Assembly (NCBI GenBank): GCA_033442325.1
Contig: JAWQFM010000018.1
Span: 574,617-638,616 of the forward strand
Source of the DNA: Salpingoeca rosetta
Taxonomy: Eukaryota; Protista; Choanoflagellata
Length of the DNA stretch: 64,000 bases
Reading direction: 5' to 3'
The notes under the pieces were generated by a model that worked only from the letters and a program-made list of their open reading frames with translations, ran no database searches and was not told where the DNA came from. A program made the translations under genes and the position numbers. Shown piece by piece: positions 13,838-16,800 of the stretch. The stretch's first letter is position 1. Each line of letters begins with the position of its first letter.

Positions 13838-16800
13838 ATGAGCAAAGCAGACTCGCTGAGAGCCAGCATCGTGGACGAGCTGTGGATGTGGAACCTGTCA
13901 CCGCAGGATGCGTTGAAGCTGACCAAAGCATGCGGCATCTCTGGCAAAAAGCACGGCGAGGACCTCATTCACGCCCTGGATTCGTTCTGTCCACCTTCCC
14001 ATGACGAGTCGTGGCTCGACGTCAAGAGTGATCTGCGCCCACTGCAGAACGTGGTCAAGAACAACCTTGGAAAAGGTCACGTGCTGTACAAGCTCATCAT
14101 CAAGCTGCAAGGTGCAACGGCAAACGCATCGAGCGGTGACGATGACGACGACGATGATGCAAGTGGTGACAGTCCACCTCCCACGAAAAAGTATGTGCTG
14201 GCTTGCCCGCGAGTTGGTGTGGCGTTCGGTTCGCTTCACAAGCTCTGTAACGTCGCTCGCCTGCCTCCCCCTGCCGCTCTCTCTCTCTCTCTCTCTCTCT
14301 CTCTCTCTCTCTCTCTCTCTCTCTCTCTCTCTCTCTCTCTCTCTCTCTCTCTCTCTCTCTCTCTCTCTCTCTCTCTCTCTCTCTCTCTCTCTCTCTCTCT
14401 CTCTCTCTCTCTCTCTCTCTCTCTCTCTCTCTCTCTCTCTCTCTCTCTCTCTCTCTCTCTCTCTCTCTCTCTCTCTCTCTCTCTCTCTCTCGGTCTCCCC
14501 GTTCCCTGCACCTTGCCCCGCTGTGTCCCATTGTTTTCCCTTCCTTGCCCTTCGCGGCACCGTACTGCCTTGCATGTTCTTTGTTCTCCTAATGTTTGAT
14601 GTCATGTTTAGCCTGATTGACGTCATGTTTAACTCGTGAGTGTCGTATAGTAGCGTTTGCCTGTGTCGTGTCACGCCGTGCCCAGTGCCTCGGAACTGCT
14701 TGCCTCTCGGCGGCGATCCCGAGCCCTTGGCACGGTACCGTCATCAACTAAGATGACGGCACGACACATGCCTGCATGCTGTGTTACGTCTGTTGCCCTT
14801 GTCTCTTGTTTTCCCCCTTGCTTAACCACAAGCACCCCTCTTGTTGCCTGCTAGCACGTGTGTGTTGCCCTGCACCCTGTTGTCGCTTATCTCACGTGAT
14901 TGTCTGTGCCTTGTTCAGTTCTTTTGTTCCCTGGTTTACTTCGCATCAGTACACAGAACAAGCCACCGACACACCTCGACCACAGTCCCGTCACACTTGG
15001 TAGCGATTGTCACACACACACACGTACTACGGACAAGCAGCAACATGGAGGAACAGTGGCACGAGATGATTGAGCACATGCGTGTGCTTACACAGACCAT
15101 GGCGCAAGCGGCACAACTTAACCACGCTGTGCATGAGTCTCAGCAGGGACCACAAGGACCAACGCGATCTACCGGTCGACCACGCGGGCCACCACCGCCG
15201 ACCTTCTCGGGTGCAACGGACGAACGAGCTGACGACTTCCTGTTCTGCTTGGAAACCTTCGTCAGGTACCATCGCATCGACGACGACGACCAGCGCCTGC
15301 TACTTGCCATCTCCTGCCTGCAAGGGCACGCCCTCACCTGGTACCGCAGCCTCGATCCAGCTCCGACGAACATGCATGAGCTTCAGGAGCAACTCCGCGC
15401 GAGTTTCAAGACCATCGATGAGCAACGCCAACTGCGGGACCAACTTCGTCGACTGCGCCAAGACGGCAACGTGCAGGACTACGTCTTCAAGTTCCGACAG
15501 CTGATGGTGCAGATCGACGACATGTCACGCCTGGACCGCATTGAAGCTTTCATCCACGGACTGCGGCCGCGCACCCGCCAGGAAGTCTCCTTCCACGGAC
15601 CCGACACTCTGGAGCAGGCCTACCAGCTGGCCTCACGCTACGATCGCAACTACACCACGGCCAACTCATCCTACCGCCGTGGAGCGCCCCCGACGCAGCC
15701 ACCTAAGTTCGACGACCGCGCCATGGACATCGACGCCATCCGTGCCCAGCGCCCCCTCCGCCGACTGACTGACCAAGAGCGCGACGAGCTTCGGCGCCGT
15801 GGCGCCTGCTTCCGTTGCCGACGCGAAGGCCACCTCGCCGCCGACTGTCCGCTGAACGCCAGCGACCGTCGGTCGGGAAACGGCACGCGCCAGTAGGGCC
15901 CGCCAGCCCTACTGGCGAGACGGAGGCGGTGTTGCTGCAAGCCACGGATGCAGTGACATCACAAGCACGCCTCCTTACCTTCCGTGGAACCATCGACGGC
16001 CGGCCGGCTAGGACCCTCATCGACCCCGGAAGCAGAATGAACGTCCTGTCCCGAGACTACGCCCTTCGCCATGGAATCGCCGTTCAACCACGCCAGTACC
16101 CAGTGGAGTTTGTCTTCGCCAATGGAACCAGGCATGTCAGCAAGGACGACACGCAGGAAGTGACCTTGCGCATTGGGACTCACCAGGAGCGACTGGTGTT
16201 CACCCTGTGTCAGCTGGGCAGCTTCGACGCCTTTCTCGGCATGCCATGGCTGCAGACTTGGAACCCTGACATCGACTGGAGGACGTCGACGGTGGTCCTC
16301 AAGACAGGACCGCTGCGCCCGAACCTGTGCCAGATCACCCTAGAGACCCCCAAGATCCAAGGACCCCAGGACACCACCGACCAAGATGAGACCCCCAAGA
16401 CCCAAGGACCCCAAGACACCAAGACCCAAGAGACCCAAGACACCGCCGACCAAGATGAGACCCCCAAGACCCAAGGACCCCAGGACACCACCGACCAAGA
16501 TGAGACCCCCAAGACCCAAGGACCCCAAGACACCAAGACCCAAGAGACCCAAGACACCGCCGACCAAGATGAGACCCCCAAGACCCAAGGACCCCAGGAC
16601 ACCACCGACCAAGATGAGACTCCCAAGACCCAAGGACAGACCCCCAAGACCCAAGGACCNNNNNNNNNNNNNNNNNNNNNNNNNNNNNNNNNNNNNNNNN
16701 NNNNNNNNNNNNNNNNNNNNNNNNNNNNNNNNNNNNNNNNNNNNNNNNNNNNNNNNNNNACTCCCAAGACCCAAGGACACCAAGACACCAAGACCCAAGA

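Follow-up and report, generated by a model that had tools for sequence, protein, structure and literature searches.

A domain family with predicted death-fold topology on sensor NTPases and putative effectors of the choanoflagellate Salpingoeca rosetta

Bacterial Death-like domains (bDLDs) occur fused to PNPase (bDLD3-PNPase), TIR and caspase domains and are linked to STAND NTPases (PMC8195603). On the eukaryotic side, no death-fold-NACHT architecture has been reported outside animals (PMC3879445; bioRxiv 10.1101/211789). NLRs are described as metazoan-specific by Yuen et al. (PMC3879445), the Death domain is listed as an animal gain by López-Escardó et al. (PMC6792448), and Richter et al. reported neither Death nor CARD domains in any choanoflagellate (bioRxiv 10.1101/211789). 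Kaur et al. 2021 make no mention of choanoflagellates (PMC8195603), and the same holds for a 2025 death-fold atlas. Here, we describe domain X, a helical domain of about 94 residues encoded twice in a 64,000-nucleotide stretch of the Salpingoeca rosetta genome (the window; positions 574617-638616 of contig C18 in an assembly of 55.4 Mb and 68 contigs). In predicted structure, X comes closest to the death effector domains (DEDs) of animals and viruses, and it stands at the termini of sensor-type NTPases and putative effector proteins. No paper describing the family was found in the accessible literature. The surveys cited above rest on Pfam hidden Markov models (HMMs), and these pass over X altogether.

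The first copy opens a gene that continues into a PNP-type domain (the X-PNP gene), and the second closes a neighboring ROCO gene on the opposite strand. The two copies are 26% identical. The original prediction, made by eye, recognized a DED-like helical pattern in copy 1 from the peptides NLSPQDALKLTKAC, GEDLIHALD, DLRPLQNVV and LGKGHVLYKLI. All four occur exactly in the translation of positions 13838-14110 of the forward strand, and the second copy it announced is present as well. In DEDs, an RxDL motif sits at the junction of helices α5 and α6. Both copies of X carry LGxxH in its place (LGKGH in copy 1, LGERH in copy 2) and lack any RxDL, as had been proposed. Across the family, nearly every copy has LGxxH in the loop ahead of its last helix. 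Each of the residues H81, L20, L47 and L69 is shared by 90% or more of 12 paralogues. A Cys/His metal site formed by ACG, CPP and LGxxH was considered and dropped because the two cysteines are not retained, both being substituted in several copies.

AlphaFold2 models built with the paralogue alignment reached a predicted local distance difference test score (pLDDT) of 87.9 and a predicted TM score (pTM) of 0.74 for copy 1. The corresponding values for copy 2 are 88.2 and 0.76, with a pLDDT of about 97 across the domain itself. DSSP assigns five helices in the same order to both models (residues 3-16, 22-31, 40-49, 67-77 and 82-93 in copy 1). Helix 2 is followed by a short connector without helical structure. 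The inserted Cys-Pro loop noted earlier corresponds to a conserved, non-helical segment of 17 residues (FCPPSHDESWLDVKS / NCPQGSNLPYLSPDS) that precedes helix 4 in both models. Mapped onto a DED, helices 1 and 2 of X correspond to α1 and α2, helix 3 to α4, and helix 4 to α5. The connector stands where α3 has been reduced to a loop, the Cys-Pro loop is inserted between DED helices 4 and 5, and LGxxH together with helix 5 covers the α5/α6 junction and α6.

Each model was aligned structurally against 48,161 representative PDB chains. For copy 1, the first 23 matches are all death-fold domains. The same applies to the first 36 for copy 2, two of which are taken to be NLRP pyrin domains inside larger complexes. 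DEDs rank first for both models, and the alignments within these two blocks span 72-86 residues. Copy 1 retrieves DED2 of MC159 (score 7.8), DED2 of caspase-8 (7.7) and the FADD DED (6.9), with DD, PYD and CARD domains lower, at 6.2 or less. Matches of copy 2 include caspase-8 (8.7 and 8.6) and the FADD DED (7.9), and its best match other than a DED is the AIM2 PYD (7.8). A SAM-like fold, named beforehand as the contrary outcome, is rejected: the 50 best structural matches of each model include no SAM domain. Foldseek searches of the PDB placed PEA-15 at or near the top with non-significant E values (0.65-1.7). The bromodomain matches in the same searches are noise, at TM scores of about 0.3, and a Foldseek search of viral structures returned nothing.

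The models thus indicate, with high confidence, a death-fold topology across the whole of X, closest to that of DEDs. The interpretation drawn by eye is supported. Its helix-by-helix mapping agrees with the predicted structures, but no sequence method reproduced the match to the DED consensus. The PF01335 HMM finds no match in X, and the E/D-RxDL charge triad at the helix 5/6 junction is missing. Because both the HMM match and RxDL fail, X is filed here as a death-fold-like family and not as a DED.

Sequence searches define the extent of this family. The copy 1 peptide matches 12 places in the S. rosetta genome, and a 12-sequence profile finds 17, of which 16 have E values from 1e-35 to 5e-8. 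The genome holds about 16 copies of X, and by sequence comparison their similarity lies far above chance. Between two ROCO paralogues on C18, the ratio of nonsynonymous to synonymous substitution rates (dN/dS) is 0.36 for X and 0.37 for the adjacent COR region. A 15-sequence profile, which HMMER compared with every one of 1.84 billion representative proteins, gave only 15 matches at E<=1e-3. Nine strong ones are all from S. rosetta, and one is from Microstomoeca roanoka, the sister species and the only clear source of a relative outside S. rosetta. The longer isoform of the latter protein, P0017, consists of X followed by a PNP_UDP_1 domain and provides transcript evidence for the X-PNP architecture. 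Two further matches are orphan metagenomic proteins (P0012 and P0015), and the remaining three were discounted as low-complexity or partial. No prokaryotic relative appeared among the 1.84 billion representatives, and a bacterial origin of X is rejected on that account.

Pfam gave nothing for copy 1 at E<=1, and only four unrelated single matches for 15 copies at E<=10, with the DED (PF01335), effector-associated domain (EAD) and bDLD models unmatched. In the six-frame translation of the genome, neither the PF01335 HMM at E<=1 nor the Death HMM found a match. The family profile retrieved nothing from the PDB sequences at E<=10, and an ESM Atlas feature search returned only unrelated bacterial clusters that fell short of the recognition threshold. 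X is a real domain family, confined, as far as visible, to the S. rosetta and M. roanoka lineage.

The metagenomic protein P0012 (ENA ERZ27275609, on a 17.4-kb contig) has 326 residues with three tandem X-like repeats that match the profile weakly (E 3e-5). Its contig is compact and carries mostly orphan genes on both strands, including a Hint-domain gene and a weak DUF5771 match. Neither relatives of P0012 nor an IMG/VR locus were found. This contig might be part of a giant-virus genome. If P0012 were viral, a tandem death-fold-like decoy would parallel the viral FLIPs.

The proteins that carry X give the family its functional context (Table 1). X follows LRR, Roc and COR domains in the ROCO proteins, precedes a NACHT-type STAND NTPase or a Rad50/SbcC-type ATPase in others, and is joined to PNP-type, TIR-containing and predicted membrane-bound partners. 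X is thus a terminal domain of NTPase sensors as well as of diverse effectors and recurs in linked genes, the pattern by which Kaur et al. define effector-associated adaptor domains. The genome has the PNP-type domain exactly four times, and every copy adjoins an X domain and, in addition, a gene for a ROCO-X protein. The LmuB score of P0006 may be inflated by its coiled coil. A further locus on contig C15 (316000-323400) has an X exon and, about 240 nt downstream, an open reading frame (ORF) that combines a helical region like that following the NTPase of P0005 with seven or more WD40 repeats. A P-loop domain is not visible in the interval between the X exon and the WD40 ORF, and much of the locus is masked as N. 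The annotated model PTSG_02681 appears to comprise one gene of the layout Roc-COR-(TIR-like 'DVFISY')-X and, downstream of it, an X-X'-PNP gene with its own ATG and upstream stops.

From this arrangement, X is probably a homotypic adaptor through which putative killing enzymes are coupled to sensor-type NTPases. Activation of the ROCO sensor would lead to its oligomerization and thereby to clustering of its C-terminal X domains. The clustered domains would recruit and concentrate X-PNP, the product of the divergent neighbor gene, by binding its N-terminal X. Proximity could then switch on X-PNP, and the presumed nucleosidase would deplete nucleotides as an immune or cell-suicide output. Other sensors (the STAND NTPase and the SMC/LmuB-like ATPase) and other effectors (TIR and the small membrane protein) may plug into the same system through X. 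The analysis establishes the family, its predicted fold, its domain architectures and the pairing of the genes; we infer the X-X contact, the activation by proximity, the nucleosidase activity and the role in immunity or cell death. A bolder version would have S. rosetta running a working death-fold network, in which ROCO, STAND and SMC-like sensors nucleate assemblies of X that switch on PNP, TIR and membrane effectors, and in which X is also a genuine, very divergent relative of the animal death folds. This combined claim is advanced tentatively and is less likely to hold than the adaptor function.

Table 1. Features of the window, X-carrying proteins and paired loci. Plain coordinates refer to the window; those with a contig prefix refer to the assembly.
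Feature	Location	Strand	Content
X-PNP gene, exon 1	13838-14190	+	X, poly-Asp acidic stretch, Pro-rich linker
Copy 1 of X	13838-14119	+	frame opens at ATG 13838
X-PNP gene, intron	14191-20931	+	6741 nt, ~432 nt original, rest retrotransposon
X-PNP gene, exon 2	20932-21919	+	PNP_UDP_1-like nucleosidase-type domain; stop 21917-21919
Ty3/gypsy LTR retrotransposon	14246-20549	+ (sense)	6304 nt, inside X-PNP intron
Long terminal repeats (LTRs)	14246-14995 and 19926-20549		TG..CA ends
Target-site duplication	14241-14245 and 20550-20554		AGCTC, 5 bp
gag	14841-15896
pol	15815-19897		protease-RT-RNaseH-integrase-chromodomain
ROCO gene (model P0003)	10021-12929	-	mapping of P0003 and P0004 onto window
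LRR remnants	12569-12929	-
Roc core	~11700-11936	-
COR	~10318-11430	-
Copy 2 of X	10036-10317	-	C-terminal end of ROCO ORF 10021-11487
ORF downstream of ROCO 3' end	7114-9357	+	Beta-prop_ACSF4 (8.9e-56), PQQ_2
P0003 (window's gene), P0004			LRR-Roc-COR-X
P0007			Roc-COR-TIR-X
P0002			X-X'-PNP_UDP_1
P0017 (M. roanoka)			X-PNP
P0001 (PTSG_02681)	C4:944-949k		1593-aa annotated model, appears to merge two genes
P0005			X then NPHP3_N (NACHT-type STAND) NTPase
P0006 (PTSG_07399)			X then Rad50/SbcC-type ATPase with long coiled coil; PADLOC Lamassu LmuB 3e-14
P0008			small protein: X then predicted membrane helices (sequence reading)
P0009			low-complexity region then X
ROCO-X/PNP pair (window)	C18:584-596k		head-to-head
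ROCO-X/PNP pair	C18:495-501k		head-to-head
ROCO-X/PNP pair (PTSG_05953/05954)	C15:724-732k		head-to-head
ROCO-X/PNP pair	C4:946-949k		tandem

The ROCO and X-PNP genes of the window are divergent, with an intergenic region of about 900 bp. Pfam recognizes Roc in the ROCO gene (8.7e-10) and COR-A weakly (0.0079). In its paralogues, COR-A is strong (9e-17 and 2e-14), and the order Roc then COR is present. Compared with the paralogue P0004, only two LRR-like units are kept. The beta-propeller ORF downstream of the ROCO 3' end is unrelated to X. The window also carries (TG)n and (CT)n microsatellites and introns, together with the LTR retrotransposon.

A first alternative concerns ancestry and is compatible with X acting as an adaptor. 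X may be genuinely homologous to the metazoan DEDs and other death folds and highly diverged from them, having been either inherited from an ancestor of the choanozoans or derived from bacterial Death-like domains, so that death-fold adaptor signaling would predate animals. The rank of DEDs at the top of the structural matches of both copies and the identical helix order are in line with this idea. The same can be said of the partners of X, as Roc-COR (found in DAPK1), STAND NTPase, TIR and PNPase match those of animal and bacterial death-fold systems (PMC8195603). Against homology weighs the presence of X in just two sister choanoflagellates among the representatives searched, which include other EukProt choanoflagellate transcriptomes. 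No intermediate sequences were found, moreover, and the diagnostic RxDL is absent. On balance, such kinship appears doubtful.

A second alternative concerns the X-PNP gene of the window, whose intron holds the retrotransposon. Exon 1 ends at a donor site (AAAAA/GTATGT, the slash marking the junction) at 14191 in phase 2, and the acceptor of exon 2 (CCTCAG/G) is phase-compatible. Exon 2 was located by tblastn with P0002 and P0017 and begins IVIVCAKPYEFEAM..., the same start as in the PNP exons of these two proteins. The two exons were searched separately. On its own, exon 2 scores 18.1 bits against PF01048 (PNP_UDP_1, the purine/uridine phosphorylase superfamily; E 0.0019), under the cut-off of 25.1, and 3e-8 against PADLOC PDC-M60C. 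P0001 and P0017 reach 26.5 bits against PF01048, above the gathering cut-off, and a phmmer search of the PDB with the PNP domain was blank. The window's gene has a single X, as has P0017 of M. roanoka, and P0002 and P0001 have two.

The inserted element is full-length and matches Pfam Retrotrans_gag, Ty3_capsid and aspartyl protease. A (CT)n microsatellite is present in each LTR. Toward its N-terminus, pol has a tandem TPKTQGPQDT-type repeat that is broken by a 100-N gap near 16700. Because the LTRs are 99.8% identical (BLAST), the insertion must be very recent.

A nearby paralogue of the X-PNP gene (C18:494840-495688) is 78-86% identical to it and degenerate. Its X loses the reading frame past helix 2, and through a deletion X runs, out of frame, into the PNP part at about residue 111. 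The head-to-head neighbor of this copy is a ROCO-X gene that appears intact. Situated some 90 kb away from the window, the locus seems to be a duplicate of the two-gene cassette in decay.

Given the Ty3/gypsy insertion and the single X, the window's X-PNP could itself be a dead gene and copy 1 of X a relic. The presence of the sense-oriented 6304-nt element within the intron speaks for this view, as do the frameshift and truncation of the nearby paralogue and a dN/dS of 0.69 between the X domains of the two genes. However, both exons are open, the splice sites are consensus and phase-compatible, and the insertion is of very young age. The single-X layout, moreover, is that of the expressed M. 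roanoka orthologue. We regard death of the gene as somewhat unlikely. The weakest alternative, in which X is a lineage-specific helical interaction or regulatory module whose resemblance to death folds is convergent or an AlphaFold bias, with no kinship to animal death folds and no death or immune role, is improbable on two grounds. For each of the two copies, which are 26% identical, matches from one and the same superfamily fill the top of the list of 48,161 chains without a gap. In addition, X sits at the ends of NTPase sensors and of effectors of the TIR, PNP and membrane types, a placement that follows the rules of architecture known for death-fold and effector-associated domains.

As an adaptor, X would have consequences beyond this locus. 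A DED-like adaptor in S. rosetta would mean either that the death and immune adaptor logic of animals and bacteria extends to the closest unicellular relatives of animals or that it originated independently there. If the bolder version held, death-fold adaptor signaling, including a death-fold-STAND 'proto-NLR', would be older than animals. S. rosetta is both transfectable and editable and would therefore offer an experimental system for the adaptor question.

Compared with animal and viral DEDs (PEA-15, FADD, the tandem DEDs of caspase-8 and cFLIP, the poxvirus vFLIP MC159; PF01335), X has no sequence match, carries LGxxH for RxDL, has a loop at the position of helix 3, and bears the conserved 17-residue Cys-Pro insertion. 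Its effector is a PNP-type nucleosidase rather than a caspase, and its host is a choanoflagellate. With the bacterial bDLD1-5 and EAD1-11 (PMC7159879, PMC8195603), X shares the use of one small helical domain on an NTPase sensor and on effectors from neighboring genes. Unlike these, it is eukaryotic and intron-containing, its sensor is a ROCO GTPase, and it has neither a Pfam EAD or bDLD match nor a bacterial relative.

DAPK1 shares with the ROCO-X proteins a Roc-COR unit followed by a C-terminal death-fold domain. In DAPK1, however, kinase and ankyrin modules are present and the Death domain is of the canonical type (PF00531), whereas the X proteins have an N-terminal LRR or an inserted TIR and a terminal domain that is DED-like by structure only. 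Resemblance to animal NLRs and Apaf-1 is seen in P0005, where X precedes an NPHP3_N/NACHT-type NTPase, and at the C15 locus, where an X exon lies before WD40 repeats. In contrast to those proteins, the N-terminal X is undetected by the Death, CARD, PYD and DED HMMs. By the logic of the whole system, X has its nearest counterparts in DAPK1-type ROCO-death proteins, NLR/Apaf-1 architectures and the bacterial bDLD/EAD systems.
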